From: Zygophlyctis sp. KS116
Lineage: Eukaryota; Fungi; Chytridiomycota
DNA: 28,466 nucleotides
Direction: 5' to 3'
Assembly (NCBI GenBank): GCA_054661495.1
Contig: BAAFSQ010000123.1
Coordinates: forward strand, 1 to 28,466
Of the stretch, positions 86 through 19,503 are shown in pieces. Position 1 is the stretch's first letter. The number at the start of each line of letters is the position of its first letter. The notes under the pieces are model-generated. The model was not told the origin of the DNA, did not search any database, and saw only the letters and a list, made by a program, of their open reading frames with translations. A program made the translations under genes and the position numbers.

Positions 86-832
86 TTATCCAGAAATATA
101 AAATGTATTGGGAATCAGACGATCATAGCGAAATTGGAAATTTGTCCGAAATCCAATTGCTATAATATTGAGAACTCCTGTAGAAACAGCCCAAAGAAAA
201 CTATTTAAATCGCCTGATTCATTAGCATATATAAATCCAAGAATAAATAAATAGAAAGAAATCAAATGAATAATAAGAAATGATGCGAGGTATTTTATCG
301 TTTCAGGAATGACCTCGAATTGTAGGAGAGAAATGTACTCGTAAATATTGATGACCAACAGCAAATTAGAAAATGCAAATGAAAGATATGTATAGATAGT
401 TTTTTTCCTGAAAATAATTGACACATTCTATGATGAATATCTGAATACGCTTACATTCGATGATTTCTTCTTGGATTCCGGTTTGACTGCAGGAGGCGCA
501 TCGGCTGGCTCGGACCTGGTTATTTTGCTTTCGATGCGCTTTGCCAATACTTTTTCGAGTATCTCTCTCTCTTGATCAGCCAAGGAAATGGCAGATGATC
601 TTCTAACAGAAAAATTGGACACACCCGTGGAGTTTTTCATGACTGCTTTCTCGTCATCCTCTTCTATAGTATTCTTATCTTCAGATGTAATGGTTCTTCT
701 TCTTATACGCATCTGACTCATTCGCCGGCGCACATTTGCGTCAGCTATTTCAAGAATCTCATCATCAAGCTCGTCGGCAAGTTCTTCTAAATGATCAGTG
801 CTATATGCGCTAACTTCAGACTTCAGATTCAT
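86..832 (-). CDS. Hypothetical membrane protein (charged, probably disordered N-terminus; about 3 TM helices at the C-terminus)
   Basis: ORFs 428..832 and 86..424 join in frame through a 27-nt GTAAGC..TAG intron (428-454). The ATG at 832 lies inside the last codons of the upstream ABC gene. No family recognised; both ends are uncertain. Confidence 0.6.
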
Positions 833-4167: not shown

Positions 4168-7100
4168 ATGCAAACAGCCCAAGGCCGAGCCAGGGAAACA
4201 GCCCCAAACTTGGTAAAATGTAGGGACCCCACATGTAAATGTGTCTTTAAGACTGCAAGAGGTGAGCGTAATCACAGTTCGAAGTACCACGCTCACCTTA
4301 TTAAACATGTCGGTAGACCAAATATTGCGGTAAATAGAATTTATTTAATATTTTTAGAGTCTCAATCTCAATTTGGAAGGTCCCTTAGGAGAAAATTCAT
4401 CTGAAAGTCTTCTTGATCTTGGTGATCTGGATATTTCTGGCCTTGAAATCTCTGAGGGCCCTCTGATTTCTGTAATGATTTTAAAATGCTTAAACTAGGC
4501 AAATTTAGAACGGATAAATGAATTAGAAGCATCAGAAGAGGGTCTAAAGTTTGCTAATGACGATTTACAAAATGCATTAAATGTGGAACAAAAGTAATTA
4601 TGATCTAAACTTAAATTAGAAAAGCTGATGATTACGAGAAATTATGTGATTCGCAGGCAATGCAATTATTGATGCAATCAGAGATAATAAGGGTCTCAAA
4701 AAGTAAATTGGATCAACAAAATGATAATTTTGAGCAAAAGATGGATGCTGTGAAGATGGATGCTGAAAGAAGGATTTTTGAAACTCAAAAGGCTATGCGT
4801 ATAGAGGTACTGGATAAAAGTATTTAAAAAATTAGCTAGATGAAGCAAGAAAGGATTTTGGTATACAGATGGAGGAATTGATATCACAAAGAGATCATAT
4901 GGAAAATCAACTAATGATGGAAATGAATCACGCTAAAAGAAGAGTAAAACATTCTATTTATAAATCAAAAGATGGCTTCTGAATTGGAATCTTTGAAAGA
5001 ACTTCAAAATACACAGCAGTCCAAGGAAATCGATTGGCAGATGAGATTAAATTATATGGAATCTGAGCTTAATACTATAATTGATGATGATAAAGAAACA
5101 ATATCAAATCTAGAACTCAACGTTTGCAATTTATATCAAAATATTAAAGAGTAAGGATTTTTTAACTAAATGGTTAGTCTAAACAGTAATATAGACATGA
5201 TTAATCATGATCTGAATGAAGCAAGATCTGTCGTACAGTCTAAAGATGATGAAATCGATCGGTTGCAGACTTTATCAATGGATTTAACGAATAAGTTGGA
5301 AATAACCAAACAAAAGCTTAGTAGTCTAAACAAGAAACTAGAGGAAGATGATATGACTATTAATCTTGCAAACCAGAATATCTCTACTCTTCGAAATGAC
5401 GTATCTGCGCTGAAAAGGTAAATAATACATTATTCTTATTCTAGTGAAAATGCTAAACTTGAAGAGTCAACCAACAATTTAAAAAGGGCAAAGAGCGATC
5501 TAGAAAACAAGATATTTCTTCAAAGTACTTTATTTTGTACAGTAATATTATAGAGGAAGATTTCCTGAGTCTTCACTCAACTTATGAGGCTTCAAAACTG
5601 CAATGTAAAATGGTAAAGTTTACAGAGATAATTATAGGATATGGAAAAGGCACTTTCCTTATTAAAAAATGAACTTGTCTCAGATTATGAAGGAGTTATT
5701 GATGGAATTAGAAAACAAGCCAAAATTGAGCTCATTAATGCAATTTCAGAAAAATGGGATCAAATAAAGGAGATTCAAAACTCGATGAAAACACAGGAAT
5801 TAAATTTTAACAAAAGTCTAGCGTCTCAAAATGAAGTGTCCATTGCTGAAAAAACTGATTTACAGGTACTTTTGACACATAGTGTTCATAAATTAGTCTA
5901 AATTAAACTCAAGTATCGAAACTGCGAAATCTCTTCAAAGAGACTTTAATGCAGCAAACGTAGAAATCAATCAAAAGCTACTTGAAATTTCTAAACTAAA
6001 ATCCGTGATTGATGTACTTTTCTGTCTGGAATTAATAATTAGAGTTTAAATGATCAAATATTTGTTTTGGAAGTCGATAAATCTCACTGGTTCCTTCAAA
6101 TAGAAGCCACAGATAAACGGGCTAGAGCAGAAGAAGTAGGAAAGTCTGCAATTGAAAAGGAAAAACTGGAAGCGGCACTGTAAGTTACTTTAGGATTCTA
6201 AAAGTAAGGAGAGCAGATCATGCGGAGCATATGGATATATTAAGGACAAGTCTTCAGCAGCAATCTGATCAAATGCTGCAGGAACAGGAATCCCGCATGC
6301 AAAGGTCACATAACTCATCAATTCAAGCACTCAATAAGAAATATCATGAGGAATTGAAGATTGAAAGAGACAAAGTGTTTACTTACGAAAAGCTTTTGAA
6401 TGATATTAAAAGAAAACTTAAAGATCAAGACGAATATAGATCTGGAAATATTGCAGAGCCTACAAAAGTTCAACTGAAATCTGTAAGAGTAAATCTGTAA
6501 TTATAGGGGAAAAGAAACCTTTTATCGGATTCAGATGTAGAATATGCAGTTAATCCCTTACCGGATTATCTGGTATGTACAACATTCAGCATTGTCGAAA
6601 ATGGTCTCGGGTCTCAGTTATACCGTAAGATCACCAAATGGGACAACATACCTCTGTCTCTTTCAAATGGATCGGACCCGGACAATACGGATAGAGGAAA
6701 GGGGAAGAAAGGTGTTAACAAATTGGAGACGAACTTTTTAAACAATATACGAACAAAAATGGTCTCTATTTTAAAATCAATTGGGTTCCGCCGGATATTT
6801 ACCTTCGGTGGAAATAATTCAAAATTTTTTATACCTTGGATCAGGCCACAGCTTTCAGATTCTACTTTTTATTATACAGACTGTTGCCATATGTGCCAGT
6901 TCTACAATCCTTTGTACAAACCTAATCAAGACGCTCATGAGAAGTTGGACAAATGGCTATCTATAATTTCTTCTGCAAAGATTTCATTTGGACAAGAAAT
7001 GTTTAGACAAAAGGGGCCTGGATATGAGAAACAACTTTTAATCCGACGCCAAGCACTTTTTCACGCGAGCCAGATGGGTGGAAGAGTATCTGTGGAACGT

Positions 7101-8240: not shown

Positions 8241-9257
8241 TTACAACTTAATCTCTCTACTAAATCCACAAAAGTCCAAATATTTCTTTTTCTACCTTTA
8301 AGAAACTTAAATTACCAATTCTTCAATTTGAATTTCTAATTCCAAAGTCTTTAATTTCTGCCAACCTGAATGTTTCCAACATTTCCCTACTTTTTGACAA
8401 ATCTTTTCCTTGTAATCTTGATTATCAAGCCTTGTAATATCTTGTAATTCAAGATTTTCTAAATTTTTATCAATCTTTACAATGTCAATCCTTTCTTCTA
8501 AAATATTTAAATCTCCTTGAATTATAGAATAATCAAACCCACAAACCATTTCATTTGTTGGCTTATCTAGATTAATATAATGTACATTATCAACAATCTG
8601 ATCAATCATCAACAATTTTTCTTCTGATTTCCTTAAATCTTGTTTGAGTGCATTCCTAGAGTCTAAAAGAAACTCCAATTCATTTTCTAATTCATCATAA
8701 TTAAAAGGATCTTGTAAATTTTGAAATTTAATATTTGAAATTGTTTCAAAAGATTTAAAACATTTAGTTCTTGAATCAGACTCTAGTATTTTTTCTACAA
8801 TTCCCCTGTAAACTATTTTACCACAGTCTTGTGAACAATATTTACCAGATTTTGACGAGAAATTAAGTCTAGCATACTCTTGACAACCATTACATTTTTC
8901 CAAGAGTATAATACTCTTACCAAAAGTAATACAAGTAGAACATGCCCTATTTCTTGAGAGATTTAGATTATACCATGTATGTATTCCTTTTGCAGTATTT
9001 TCGTCCATATCATGACAAATCCCATGAAACCATTCTGAGCAATAGTCACAACAAATATGAAATTCATCTGCAGTCTGCTGTAAACAAGAGCAATTAATAT
9101 CAGACTCCTTGACTGGAGAGTACGATTTAGATGATGATACAAGTTTCCGTTTCTTGAGCGGCCAATGAGTCTCTTTTGTATTGTCTGTTATGACACTACT
9201 GACACTACTCATGTTATTACTCATGGGAGAATGTGTCTCTACAGGAAAAGATTCCAT
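8241..9257 (-). CDS. SPP1: COMPASS PHD-finger subunit, Spp1/Cfp1(CXXC1)-like
   Basis: PHD CSC..ICCDYCSEWFHGIC..WACSTC is restored by removing the in-frame 27-nt intron 8947-8973. Also KYCSQDCG and C-terminal ICQKVGKCWKHSGWQKL, typical of Spp1/Cfp1. A second intron at 8292-8315 has an ambiguous acceptor. Start placed at ATG 9257; other Mets are possible. Confidence 0.8.
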
Positions 9258-9267
9258 TTTAATTTTT

Positions 9268-10471
9268 ATGCTAAAGTGGACAATTCCAGTCATTCTCATA
9301 CTATGGTATCCCAGGATATACAGGAAAATCATTAATTGGATTATAAATTCACCAGTCTTGTACTATTGGCAAAAAACATTATCTACAACTCATTCTAGTT
9401 TAGGAAAACTTAATATTTACCATTCTAAATCTTTGGGAATTAGTATTACTCCTGTACCTTGTGGTGCAGATAATTATGCTTACTTGGTAATTGATTTAAA
9501 GAATAGTATTCTAGATTTTTTAAAATTGTAGAAGTTGCAGTTGCAATAGATCCTGTAGATCCAAAAAGACTACTAAATGCATTATATGAAATTGATTCTC
9601 AAATTGAATTAACTCATGTTTTAATAACTCATAAACATTGGGATCATGCTGGTGGAAATAGAGATTTAGTAAAGAAATTTCCAGGATTGGTTATAGTTGG
9701 AAGTAGTCTAGATTTTCCTGAAAATGGTCTCTTTAAGAACTTTTATTGTGTTAATAAGAGGGTAGTGGATAAAGAGAATGTAATTGTAAATGGAATTTTT
9801 AGAAAAATTAAATTTATAGGTTGGAAGATTGGTATTCAAGGTTCTTTATACTCCTTGTCATACTATGGGAAGTGTAATGTATCTCTTGGAAATTGATAAA
9901 ATTCAGTCTGAATTTAAGGAATTTGAAATTTTAAAAGATTTTACAAGAGATGGGTTAGATGTAGACTCTAGTAGTTTATTTACTGGAGATACGATATTTA
10001 CAGGAGGAATTGGTATTTTTAAGGATTTTTACGATAGGAAAGTTTTTTGAAGGAGATGCAAGTGATATGCATTTTGTGATTCAAAGATTGCTTTTAGATT
10101 TGGATTATAATACGCTGATTTGGCCAGGGCATGAGTATACTCTAGAAAATTTAGAATTTGCAATTGGATTAGAATCTAATAATTCTGCTTTAAAGGTACG
10201 ATATCAACAAGCTATAGAGACAAGAGTACAAGGATTATGTACAGTTCCTTCAACTTGGAAATATGAACTCATGACAAATCCTTTTTTAAGGATAGACTAT
10301 AGGACAAGAGATGAGGAATTATGGATTAATATTAAGAAGAATTTAAAAGATTTTAAATATCTAGTTAAATCTGTTGGATCAAGTTTTGAAAAAACTAAAG
10401 AAATTCAAGAAATAGTAATGTTGGATTGTTTAAGATCTCTTAAAGATAAATGGAAGAGTAAAAAAGAATAA
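9268..10471 (+). CDS. Hydroxyacylglutathione hydrolase (glyoxalase II)-family metallo-beta-lactamase-fold protein, PNKD/HAGHL-like, with hydrophobic N-terminal extension
   Basis: Introns 9506-9531, 9786-9819 and 10013-10037 restore DNYAYLVID, THKHWDHAGGN, TPCHT, LFTGDTIFTGGIGKFFEG, WPGHEYT and ELMTNPFLR. Confidence 0.9.
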
Positions 10472-10485
10472 TTTTAATGCTATTA

Positions 10486-11394
10486 TTAAATACCATTCCA
10501 TGTCCTTGTTTTATCTGAAATCACCACCATATCATATAATTCTCCTTCATCTTTTGCCAATCTTTCCAAGAGAGCTGCTGATAATGATTTTTTTAGTTTT
10601 GATAATACAGATGCCTTGATTGAAGTCTGTACTGATTCTGGTAAAGTTCTTACTAATGGAGTAAGCGTAAACACTACTCGAAGAGGAACTAGATCTGAAA
10701 TAAATGCAGAAGATGATTTTGGATCTAACGGAGTTATAGTTACTCTTGTTGTTTTTGATCTTAAATCTTTAATATTGTTTGATGGTGACTTTGGTCTTTT
10801 AAAAGCAGGTGAAGTAGGAATCGACCAATCCATACTTTTGAGTTCCTGTAATATTGATGATACATCCTTGTCAATCGAATCAATCAATCCTCTTGTAGAT
10901 ACTGTTGTGTGATTGAAATTGTGTTCTTTTTTATTAGATATTGAATTGTTTGATTTAATTGAAGAACTGTACTCGTCCATTGATCTTGCTCCATGAATAG
11001 ATTCATTTGATGATGATGCTCTTATACTACGAAATGCATTCGGAGGTCTAGATGGCATACTTAGAGGTCTTCCACTTAAAGCCAATGATTTCTGAATTGG
11101 AATTTCCAATATTTTCCTTAAATGAATAGAATCATTTGTCCAAAGCCTGTTGATTCTCTTGACTTCTCCAACGCCAACTCTATACATTACACAAATTCCT
11201 TCCAATGTATCATCCGGTTGAATTAAATGATGAATTATTTGATCTGAATCATTCTGGGATTTTACATCAAACGAATGCCTGTTCTTGATGCTCATTGCTG
11301 GAGATGAAGGACCTTTACTATTCTTATAGTCGAATGAATCAGTGAGATCTATCGGAGAAATCAGTGGATGGCTAGTCGTAGATGTTATTGACAT
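10486..11394 (-). CDS. Intracellular LysM-domain protein
   Basis: HLIQPDDTLEGICVMYRVGVGEVKRINRLWTNDSIHLRKILEIP is one LysM repeat. Ser-rich flanks, no signal peptide, intronless. Confidence 0.85.
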   Translation of the reverse strand: MSITSTTSHPLISPIDLTDSFDYKNSKGPSSPAMSIKNRHSFDVKSQNDSDQIIHHLIQPDDTLEGICVMYRVGVGEVKRINRLWTNDSIHLRKILEIPIQKSLALSGRPLSMPSRPPNAFRSIRASSSNESIHGARSMDEYSSSIKSNNSISNKKEHNFNHTTVSTRGLIDSIDKDVSSILQELKSMDWSIPTSPAFKRPKSPSNNIKDLRSKTTRVTITPLDPKSSSAFISDLVPLRVVFTLTPLVRTLPESVQTSIKASVLSKLKKSLSAALLERLAKDEGELYDMVVISDKTRTWNGI

Positions 11395-11426
11395 TCTGAA
11401 ACGAAAAAAAGGAAAATTTACGAGTT

Positions 11427-12465
11427 TTAAATCGAATCGAATATTTCCATCAAGGATTTAGATATAATCCGAATATTATAATCAATCAATCCTTGTTTGT
11501 CTAGTGCATCTTCCCTAATTAATGCAACTATTACCAAATGTGAATTTACAGGTCTCAAGTATAATTGTCCATTATTAAGGCTAATAATTGACTCATCATT
11601 CTTGATATCTGTTGAAAAAGTTGCTGTATTCCCATATATACTTGACATATCTAGTACCACATCTATTACATCTGAACATAATTCATAAGTTCCTATATCT
11701 ACAGGAGATGAATCAGTTGCGATATAAATCTTTGACATTGCATCAAATAAAAAAACTTTTTCAATTCCAGAATTCTAACCTTTAATTGATTCAACTTACA
11801 GAACAGAGTATATTAAGTAGAGATTCAAGTGTAGGAAGTTGTGGAATTAGTTTTTGTACAACTTTTGAAAATGCTTCAAAAATTGAATGATCATAGATTG
11901 AAGTTAGATAAAAACTTAGATAAACTGATTCTAGTCCTGCATCCATAAATTCATCTGTTAATCTTTGAAGTATATCTCGTTGAGTATCTATTAATTTAGA
12001 AAAAATAGAATAGTACCAATTTTATAATCATCAGACAGTCCATCTACCTTGTGAATAAAAACTTCAAAATTAATTTTTGGATTGATATAGTATGCACGCG
12101 ATACAGTTAAGAATAAGCGATGTAACGCTTCAAGATAATCTTCTTGAACATCAATCACAAATATTAGAGCGCCACATTTCCTAAATAAATCATCAAAATC
12201 CATGACGGTATCAGAAAAATTCCATAAATTAGGAAAATCTTCCACTCGTAAGTCTACAAACGATCTGACATCAGACTAGAGAAATACCTAATTTCATCCT
12301 TTTCCTTTGAGTTTGATTCTAAAAATAATGTTTCATTTGGTGACATTTTCTGAAAAACCACTTTAGCAATTGATGATTTCCCTCCTCTACAGTTAGATTG
12401 GGAAAATACCTCTTTAGGCCCATCAGTGCCAGTAACGGTTTTGAGGAAAAAGTATTATATTTCAT
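11427..12465 (-). CDS. GTR2: Rag GTPase Gtr2/RagC-D
   Basis: Introns 12387-12409, 12265-12287, 11988-12016 and 11775-11799 give [74 protein letters not shown] and [12 protein letters not shown], all collinear with RagC. Confidence 0.96.
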
Positions 12466-12467
12466 TT

Positions 12468-13622
12468 CTAAAACTCAAAATTCGACCAAATTTCAGTCTT
12501 CCAATTAGAAAATTTGTCCTGAAGAAATTCTTGATTTGAATCTTGAACTGAAATTGGTTCGTTTGGATCAATTAGAGGCTTTTTAACTACTGGAAATACT
12601 GGAGAGGCTATTCCTGGAGAGGCCAAAGAAGAAACTGCAGGAGATGAAACATGCATAATAGGTTGAGCTTGTGGATAAGCATAATAATCTTGTGTAGAGA
12701 CAGGTTGAGGAGGTCGAATCATTGATTGAGGAGTTGTGGGTGCAATTCCTTTACCCCAACTTAATTTTACTCTTGTTCCATTTAGTAGAAATCCATTCAT
12801 ATTATTAATAGCCATTTCAGCACTTGATCGATACACAAATTGAATAAATGCACATCCTTTACCTTGAGGTATCTTAATTCCTACAATATCACCATAACCA
12901 GCAAAAAAATTTCTAATATCATCTTCTGTAGTAGTTGGTGCAGTATTTCCAACATAAACTGTAGCATCTGGTTCAGCATAACCTAAATAAACAGGAGGTA
13001 CATAAGCAGATGAAACAAGAGTAGGTGTAGCTAATTGTATAGAACTATAACTTGATCTATATTTTTGAGTTGCAGCAGACACTCTAATTGGTCTACCTCC
13101 ACAAATTACACCTTGCATTTCCATCATTGCTCTTTGTTGTTCTCTTTCATCACCAAATTTTACAAATCCATACTGTTTTGATTGACCAGTTCCAGGATCC
13201 ATGACAACTTTTGCAGATCTAACAGACACATATTTTTTTTGAAATACTTGTAATAGTTGATGATCTCTTACATCCATCGCAAGATCACCTACAAATACAC
13301 TATACTCTGCAGCGGTACTATTATCAGCTTTAAAAGCAGTCGGCATTGATCCAGGACCAGATCCAACGGCAGACCAATTCAATTTAAAGTATCTATTAGT
13401 TCCAGGCATAGGATTACCATTTAAAGAATTCATAACTCTTAAAGCGATTGCATGAGAACCAAATTCTACAAAACAATAACCTGAATTCTGTCCAGTTGTT
13501 TTATCCTTGATCATCTTTACAGAGGCTACTTGCTCTCCGAATGACTGATATAACTTTCTAATGAATAAATCATCCATATACACTTCTAAATCTCCCATCC
13601 ATAGTGTTTTAACGTCTTGCAT
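12468..13622 (-). CDS. NAM8: Three-RRM RNA-binding protein of the Nam8/Ngr1/RBP45-47/TRNAU1AP family
   Basis: TLWMGDLE, SGYCFVEF, FKLNWS, EYSVFVGDLA, SKQYGFVKFGDEREQQRAM, KGCAFIQF, RVKLSWGK. First in-frame ATG is at 13622; the ORF-track start at 13703 is TTG. Intronless. Confidence 0.88.
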   Translation of the reverse strand: MQDVKTLWMGDLEVYMDDLFIRKLYQSFGEQVASVKMIKDKTTGQNSGYCFVEFGSHAIALRVMNSLNGNPMPGTNRYFKLNWSAVGSGPGSMPTAFKADNSTAAEYSVFVGDLAMDVRDHQLLQVFQKKYVSVRSAKVVMDPGTGQSKQYGFVKFGDEREQQRAMMEMQGVICGGRPIRVSAATQKYRSSYSSIQLATPTLVSSAYVPPVYLGYAEPDATVYVGNTAPTTTEDDIRNFFAGYGDIVGIKIPQGKGCAFIQFVYRSSAEMAINNMNGFLLNGTRVKLSWGKGIAPTTPQSMIRPPQPVSTQDYYAYPQAQPIMHVSSPAVSSLASPGIASPVFPVVKKPLIDPNEPISVQDSNQEFLQDKFSNWKTEIWSNFEF

Positions 13623-14000
13623 TTTACCAACACTGGCACAGACGCTCACCTTTTCTTTATTAGAGTGCCTATAAGAGTGCTCAGGTTTGGGTGAAATTTT
13701 CAAGTATAAATAGGCTCAAGAGGTCTAGGAGTCACATTCTTTTTTTTCAAAAGGAAAAAAGAATCGAGATCTTTACTGTTGAGGGGCAGTATTATGCTGT
13801 AAATTTCTCTACAAAGTTCTCTTAGAAGAAAACAATTCCTCTTTCCTTTAAGTAGTTGAGAGAGGTCTTGTAGTCCCTATATTCTATATCTTTTCCTAGT
13901 GGCTAGATCACTGTGAAGGTTGAGAAAAACCATAGGGAATACATTTTAATAATTATCAATAACATTTTATTTTTATTAACAATCTCTCTTGTCTAGTCAT

Positions 14001-15173: not shown

Positions 15174-15202
15174 ACGCGATACGGACGCGTTGCTTTCGCG
15201 TT
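15174..15202. promoter_or_regulatory. MCB/SCB-like cell-cycle element cluster (ACGCGA, ACGCGT, TTTCGCG)
   Basis: Three CGCG cores at 15175, 15186 and 15197, just upstream of ATG 15213, in the promoter region shared divergently with H1. Confidence 0.65.
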
Positions 15203-19462: not shown

Positions 19463-19503
19463 ACGCGGTGCGTGTTATCAACGCGTTTGATGCGCGTTTC
19501 GTG
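19463..19503. promoter_or_regulatory. MCB/SCB-like cluster upstream of the GATA-RING gene
   Basis: ACGCG at 19463, CGTG at 19471, ACGCGT at 19481, CGCGT at 19493, and TTTCGTG (CACGAAA on the minus strand) at 19497-19503. Confidence 0.55.

Follow-up and report, generated by a model that had tools for sequence, protein, structure and literature searches.

Transcripts of microsporidia start inside upstream genes or terminate inside downstream ones, and control elements residing inside a neighbouring gene have been proposed as one reason why gene order is conserved there (PMC3629993, PMC2099475). Polycistronic transcripts have been described from fungi and green algae, those of green algae apparently being translated by leaky scanning past open reading frames (ORFs) that are short and lie upstream (PMC7896298). 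The locus considered here is a row of three genes on the minus strand of contig BAAFSQ010000123.1 of the chytrid Zygophlyctis sp. KS116 (assembly GCA_054661495.1), of which positions 1 to 28,466 were analysed (the window). The genes encode a protein with three RNA-recognition motifs (RRMs), a Gtr2/RagC-type GTPase and a LysM-domain protein; they are functionally unrelated, they lie on one strand at distances of 2 and 32 nt, and this arrangement is real. The junction between the first two genes is conserved, well constrained and typical of an unusually compact genome. With a rough probability of 0.6, we consider that the spacer was deleted by genome compaction and that each gene stayed its own transcription unit, the units overlapping one another.

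Structure of the gene row

The RRM–Gtr2 junction occupies positions 12463..12470 of the minus strand and was read directly as TAG-AA-ATG, with the stop TAG of the RRM gene at 12470-12468, a spacer of two bases (AA) at 12467-12466 and the ATG of Gtr2 at 12465-12463; the Gtr2 frame is +2 relative to that of the RRM gene. The original prediction, drawn from this DNA alone, had placed this stop and this start at exactly these positions. Its distance of 32 nt from the Gtr2 stop (11427) to the LysM ATG (11394) is exact as well, the T-rich spacer extending over 11395..11426 on the same strand.

The upstream gene (12468..13622, minus strand) is a single exon of 384 codons plus the stop. It matches the Pfam profile RRM_1 in three stretches (E 6e-44), and its homologues at 99% and 82% agree with it in length and at the C-terminus. 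It had first been labelled NAM8; three RRM domains are present, the best named matches are hypothetical proteins from chytrids and RBP45/47 from plants, and between Nam8 and Pub1/TIA-1 the gene is given here the broader description Nam8/TIA-1/Pub1/RBP47-like.

The Gtr2/RagC-type GTPase gene (11427..12465, minus strand) comprises 312 codons and the stop TAA at 11429-11427, distributed over five exons (12465-12410, 12386-12288, 12264-12017, 11987-11800 and 11774-11427) that are separated by introns of 23 nt (12409-12387), 23 nt (12287-12265), 29 nt (12016-11988) and 25 nt (11799-11775). The boundaries of intron 2 were set by comparison with contig L001 of a related species (species B, introduced below). 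When each exon was searched separately against Pfam, exons 2 to 5 each matched Gtr1_RagA (PF04670), in order and over profile positions 11-232. Exon 1 encodes 18 residues, followed by an Arg codon that is split by intron 1, and the GGKS that opens exon 2 completes the P-loop; the G1 loop GLKRGGKS, whose first residue is codon 16, is therefore interrupted by a 23-nt intron. A gene for the Gtr1 partner is present on contig C32 of the same assembly. The LysM-domain gene downstream (10486..11394, minus strand) is a single exon of 302 codons starting with the ATG at 11394-11392, and its LysM domain (residues 56-99) is marginal, scoring 22.4 bits where the Pfam cut-off is 20.9.

Reliability of the gene ends

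The gene ends were checked against two related freshwater metagenomic species, namely species B (contigs L001 and L031; protein identity 82% for the RRM gene) and species C (contig L004; 58%). In species B, the protein sequence of the RRM C-terminus is retained right to the stop (EIWSNFEF / ETWSSFNF), and the N-terminus of Gtr2 is conserved as well, species B having MNNNSSKPLLVLMGLKR and species C MKTNGQKLVLMGLKR. The next in-frame Met of Gtr2 is codon 15, and with a start there the protein would lack strand beta-1 (KPLLALMG), a conserved element in the two relatives; the start can therefore not be moved downstream. This is what the original prediction had held, although the G1 region that it located ten codons after the start begins at codon 16, and the distance it gave fits the start of beta-1 instead. 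Upstream, the Gtr2 frame is closed by a TGA four codons before the ATG in the window and by a TAA three codons before it in species B, so that a start further upstream is not available either. The N-terminus of the LysM protein is likewise conserved, as MSISHPL in species B and HPLLIS in species C. Finally, an ab initio gene finder trained on this genome, which combines a hexamer coding score, position weight matrices for introns and an intron-length model, independently gave exactly the same three gene models. Judged by the sequences of the relatives, all four ends (the RRM stop, the Gtr2 start and stop, and the LysM start) are fixed.

It is in this light that a mere annotation artefact has to be considered, in which the RRM gene would end earlier through an unseen intron, or Gtr2 would start further downstream, and the true spacing would be larger. 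The introns of this genome are indeed tiny and frequent, and the second in-frame ATG does exist. However, just one GT...AG candidate has its end at the junction, and it measures 19 nt, which is below the observed minimum of 22 nt, and its removal creates a TGA; together with the conserved RRM C-terminus, the conserved beta-1 strand and the identical ends picked by the gene finder, this makes an artefact very improbable. A fusion of the RRM and Gtr2 genes was also rejected, both via frameshift or read-through, given the TGA and TAA ahead of the Gtr2 ATG in the two species, and through an 88-nt intron proposed in an early pass of the finder, which disappeared once the intron-length model had been trained.

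Some further features of these genes emerged from the same comparison. The canonical G3 motif DxxGQ was not found in Gtr2: at 12225-12239 (minus strand) the window reads DFPNL and not DFPGQ, the same DFPNL occurs in species B (L031 ~780-795), and species C has DFPGH (L004 ~5232-5246), from which it follows that the G3 change is conserved and evolved stepwise. Introns 1, 2 and 4 of Gtr2 are common to the window and species B, whereas intron 3 (29 nt, 11988-12016, minus strand) is missing from species B (L031 ~990-1010), and tiny introns are thus still being gained or lost. The spacer 5' of the RRM gene is unusually long (378 nt). It contains, on the strand opposite to that gene, a candidate H/ACA small nucleolar RNA (13808-13946, plus strand) resembling SNORA73/snR30, with 39.3 bits, which is below the gathering score (74), and E 3e-08 when 501 nt were searched; the candidate overlaps a block that is near-identical in species B (L001 1-110), which together indicate that this upstream spacer is not empty.

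History of the junction

The order RRM–Gtr2–LysM is common to the window, species B (L031) and species C (L004), but the distances between the genes differ considerably. In species C, the sequence between RRM and Gtr2 comprises no fewer than 61 nt in addition to a scaffold gap (111 nt in the scaffold), and Gtr2 and LysM are 304 nt apart. In species B, the corresponding values are -1 nt, the stop and the start sharing one base in TAATG (L031 560-564), and 115 nt, and in the window they are 2 and 32 nt. The tight junctions of the window and species B are a 3-nt indel apart, with the relative frame unchanged. Since the order is shared and the spacers of species C are longer, the neighbours were originally ordinary separate genes, the spacers of which were then deleted stepwise; by this comparison, the synteny is old and the spacers were lost by deletion. 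With its series of spacers, the trio of species provides a natural experiment on the entry of signals into coding sequence while spacers vanish.

Frequency of short gaps in the genome

In order to place the junction in its genomic context, a sample of 228 kb was surveyed, consisting of the window and the first 40 kb of each of the five largest contigs (C1 to C5), which corresponds to about 1.8% of an assembly of 12.7 Mb in 1175 contigs. The survey is based on gene-finder models, in which start codons are partly uncertain and overlaps of up to 20 nt are permitted. The sample holds 119 genes and is 86% coding sequence (CDS), even though some 480 introns are present (about 4 per gene), with a sharp mode at 26 nt and a range of 22-35 nt. 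These introns have the form GTA...YAG and are very uniform in length, and such a combination of many introns with extreme compaction is an unusual pairing.

The distribution of tandem stop-to-start distances, which had been suggested as a check on the junction, could thus be drawn up for these 228 kb. The 59 tandem gaps have a median of 93 nt; five are no longer than 2 nt and eight no longer than 10 nt (-17, -17, -1, 1, 2, 4, 10 and 10 nt), and convergent gaps in the same sample have a median of 26 nt. With its 2 nt, the RRM–Gtr2 gap belongs to the lowest tenth of tandem gaps and is extreme, but not unique. Other tight pairs consist of unrelated complete genes too, for instance COG4 and a histone deacetylase (joined by TAATG), NMD3 and a glycosyltransferase (1 nt), and an acyl-CoA dehydrogenase and the gene next to it (4 nt). 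The proposal of a special operon-like expression system is weakened by this result, because near-zero spacing is common between unrelated genes of this genome.

Other observations on spacing were made along the way. As many as 11 of the 59 tandem gaps measure 87-93 nt (five of them exactly 93 nt) with no sequence in common, and this cluster may reflect a preferred minimal length of terminator plus promoter. Elsewhere in the window, an ABC-type gene and the gene that follows it overlap by 17 nt of coding sequence on the same strand (816-832, minus strand), an overlap that the gene finder reproduces, and at 9190-9270, provided that 9268 is the start of the hydrolase gene, a divergent pair would have its start codons at a distance of some 10 nt.

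Promoter-type and poly(A)-type words in neighbouring coding sequence

The words most enriched in the 90 nt before ATGs are GTCCGA/TCGGAC and ACGCGT, the latter resembling an MluI box. TCCGA and TCGGA occur upstream of 20 and 16 of 108 ATGs, respectively, compared with 5.6 expected, and ACGCGT was found in 5 of 108 upstream regions versus none of 2638 CDS windows in the genome to which the window belongs. At tight junctions, promoter words (GTCCGA, ACGCGT) lie within 100 nt before the downstream ATG and inside the upstream CDS in 4 of 12 cases, which is approximately the frequency at normal spacers, as opposed to 9.5% of CDS control windows (binomial p ~0.02). Species B provides an instance at the very junction considered here, with ACGCGTT located 49 nt upstream of the Gtr2 ATG and inside the RRM CDS. 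It is the sole such site in the overlapping contigs L001 and L031, the background for species B being taken from the frequencies in the window genome.

At the second junction of the window, the promoter-type word TTCGGA (the reverse of TCCGAA) is found at 11468..11473 on the minus strand, 79 nt upstream of the LysM ATG and within the Gtr2 codons I-R-I, where Arg is encoded by CGG, a rare choice (5.4% of Arg codons). Species B has ATC CGT ATC in its place and carries TCGGA instead at -22, within its longer Gtr2–LysM spacer. As to the window at large, ACGCG/ACGCGT is clustered in two intergenic promoter regions (15174-15197 and 19463-19493) and is nearly missing from coding sequence (about 1% of 100-nt CDS windows).

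Words of the poly(A)-signal type show a comparable distribution. In the 50 nt that follow stops, no hexamer is as enriched as AATAAA (14 of 67, compared with 3.0 expected), and TAATA, AATAA and ATAAA are enriched there as well; at tight junctions, poly(A)-type 5-mers occur within 50 nt after the stop in 5 of 12 cases versus 18% of CDS controls. In the window, the poly(A)-signal-like word TAATA is situated at 12453..12457 (minus strand), i.e. at +11 to +15 after the RRM stop and in codons 3-5 of Gtr2, and species B carries AATAATAAT at this position. Species C, which has a spacer, encodes the Gtr2 N-terminus without poly(A)-type words.

Transcription and translation across the junction

From these observations we infer where the transcripts of overlapping but separate units would start and end. 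The promoter and the start site of the Gtr2 mRNA would be hidden within the final 50-100 nt of the RRM CDS, and its leader would be very short. Cleavage and polyadenylation of the RRM mRNA would take place some tens of nucleotides inside Gtr2, directed by the A/T-rich words in the first Gtr2 codons. Gtr2 and LysM, with 32 nt between them, would be arranged likewise. Read-through RNAs of greater length may be made in addition, of which only the 5' ORF would be translated. The original prediction had left two options, a Gtr2 promoter inside the RRM CDS with an RRM 3' end inside Gtr2, or a bicistronic mRNA translated by reinitiation; the former is favoured by the embedded motifs, the poly(A)-type words and the ancestral spacers, and the latter has gained no positive support. 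A further consideration concerns RNA decay. According to the general model of nonsense-mediated decay (NMD), a stop codon located ahead of exon junctions marks a spliced RNA for decay. This genome encodes UPF1, UPF2 and Mago nashi, and thus possesses NMD and exon-junction genes, and since the RRM stop precedes the four exon junctions of Gtr2, a spliced bicistronic RNA would be expected to be an NMD substrate.

Several points weigh against separate overlapping units. In the window, the 120 nt that precede the Gtr2 ATG contain neither of the recognised promoter words. The motif tests comprise 12 tight junctions defined by our own gene models, with p values of ~0.02 for promoter words and ~0.05 for poly(A)-type words. 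The proximity of stop and start has been held at -1 to +2 nt across ~18% protein divergence, which would fit translational coupling as well. Finally, while DNA of the window is detected in numerous freshwater metagenomes, metatranscriptomes with small parts of it numbered only three, and these gave read-sized contigs of 151-206 nt at LysM (10978-11335) and the RRM gene (12896-13187); no contig from these three runs reaches the junction at 12463-12470, and none contains a joint. In exact-protein look-ups, only DNA contigs with their introns in place were matched, and no spliced sequence.

The proximity of stop and start also speaks for a bi- or tricistronic mRNA, which would be transcribed from a promoter upstream of the RRM gene and on which ribosomes would stop at the TAG and reinitiate at the Gtr2 ATG. 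Stop and start are 2 nt apart in the window and joined as TAATG in species B, in the same relative frame, and a recognised promoter word is lacking ahead of Gtr2 in the window. Moreover, yeasts and filamentous fungi are able to reinitiate over a 9-bp linker after full-length ORFs (PMC10352335), and the UAAUG coupling of the hypovirus CHV1 works in a fungal host (PMC2699510). However, reinitiation drops with the first ORF's length (384 codons here), and long ORFs need an element of the type of the termination upstream ribosomal binding site (TURBS) (PMC10275272). In neither the window nor species B do the final 150 nt of the RRM CDS contain the TURBS motif UGGGA, and the junction folds no better than shuffled sequence (z 0.61 and -0.22). 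The poly(A)-signal-like word soon after the RRM stop, the NMD and exon-junction genes, the ACGCGT embedded at -49 in species B and the ancestral spacers also speak against a bicistron, and TAATG is, in addition, a natural end point of neutral deletion. Leaky scanning to Gtr2 is excluded, as 34 ATGs follow the RRM start within its CDS. Taken together, a bicistronic mRNA appears distinctly unlikely, and it is just as doubtful that the abutting tandem class as a whole (gaps of -17 to +10 nt, the conserved TAATG included) consists of genuine cellular bicistrons that reinitiate without a TURBS-like element despite intact NMD. If it did, it would be a rare example of cellular stop-restart translation following a long ORF.

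A third reading retains both kinds of RNA and supposes that their ratio is regulated, the read-through RRM–Gtr2 RNA serving as a switch and not as a template for Gtr2 protein, for instance because its transcription interferes with an embedded Gtr2 promoter, or through down-regulation coupled to NMD. The anatomy of the locus does make RRM transcription traverse any Gtr2 promoter, and stage-specific long overlapping transcripts exist in microsporidia (PMC3629993). Nevertheless, this proposal is purely inferential, nothing in this sequence tells regulated from incidental read-through, and no metatranscriptome contig spans the junction, so that a regulated ratio may be regarded as possible but unlikely. 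Much less probable still is an operon resolved by spliced-leader trans-splicing, for which TTTTAG, an acceptor-like site falling on the RRM stop, would have to be used. The site at -2 does score 4.4, near the median of the real acceptors of this genome, and a CAG also precedes the LysM ATG. Acceptor-like sites are, however, not enriched before ATGs (30 versus 30 in a control window), genes for spliced-leader RNAs themselves not having been searched for, and neither the AG at the RRM–Gtr2 junction nor that at the Gtr2–LysM junction is present in species B. Overlapping but separate transcription units therefore remain the preferred explanation of the row.

Comparison with known systems

The viral stop-restart systems of caliciviruses, influenza B and CHV1, in which UAAUG or AUGA is combined with TURBS (PMC10275272, PMC2699510), have the TAATG in common with species B, whereas stop and start are 2 nt apart in the window. 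The UGGGA and the structured upstream element of these viruses are absent here, and the present cellular gene pair arose by deletion. The leaky scanning of green algae is ruled out at the RRM–Gtr2 junction by the ATGs already mentioned. Closer in appearance are the fungal IGG1/IGG6 bicistrons (Glarea lozoyensis; PMC10352335), in which, like here, two full-length ORFs lie on one strand with few bases between them. For these, as for the fungal and green-algal polycistrons (PMC7896298), single transcripts and both proteins have been demonstrated, whereas the evidence on the present junction comes from DNA.

The closest match is most likely the overlapping transcription of compacted nuclear genomes. 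In Encephalitozoon cuniculi, Antonospora locustae and nucleomorphs, like here, the spacers between unrelated genes are nearly gone, and signals must sit inside the neighbour, as they would have to here; microsporidia likewise conserve gene order where spacers are short (PMC3629993, PMC2099475). If our interpretation is correct, the row would represent an independent further case of nuclear genes that have lost their spacers, their promoters and poly(A) signals having come to lie within the coding sequence of neighbours. This would raise the question of how abutting genes avoid the decay or mis-splicing of read-through RNAs. The nearest named homologues of the genes studied here belong to chytrid fungi (41-49% identity) and not to microsporidia, and while microsporidia have few or no introns, compaction in this genome stands alongside many very short introns, about 4 per gene, and retained NMD and exon-junction genes.

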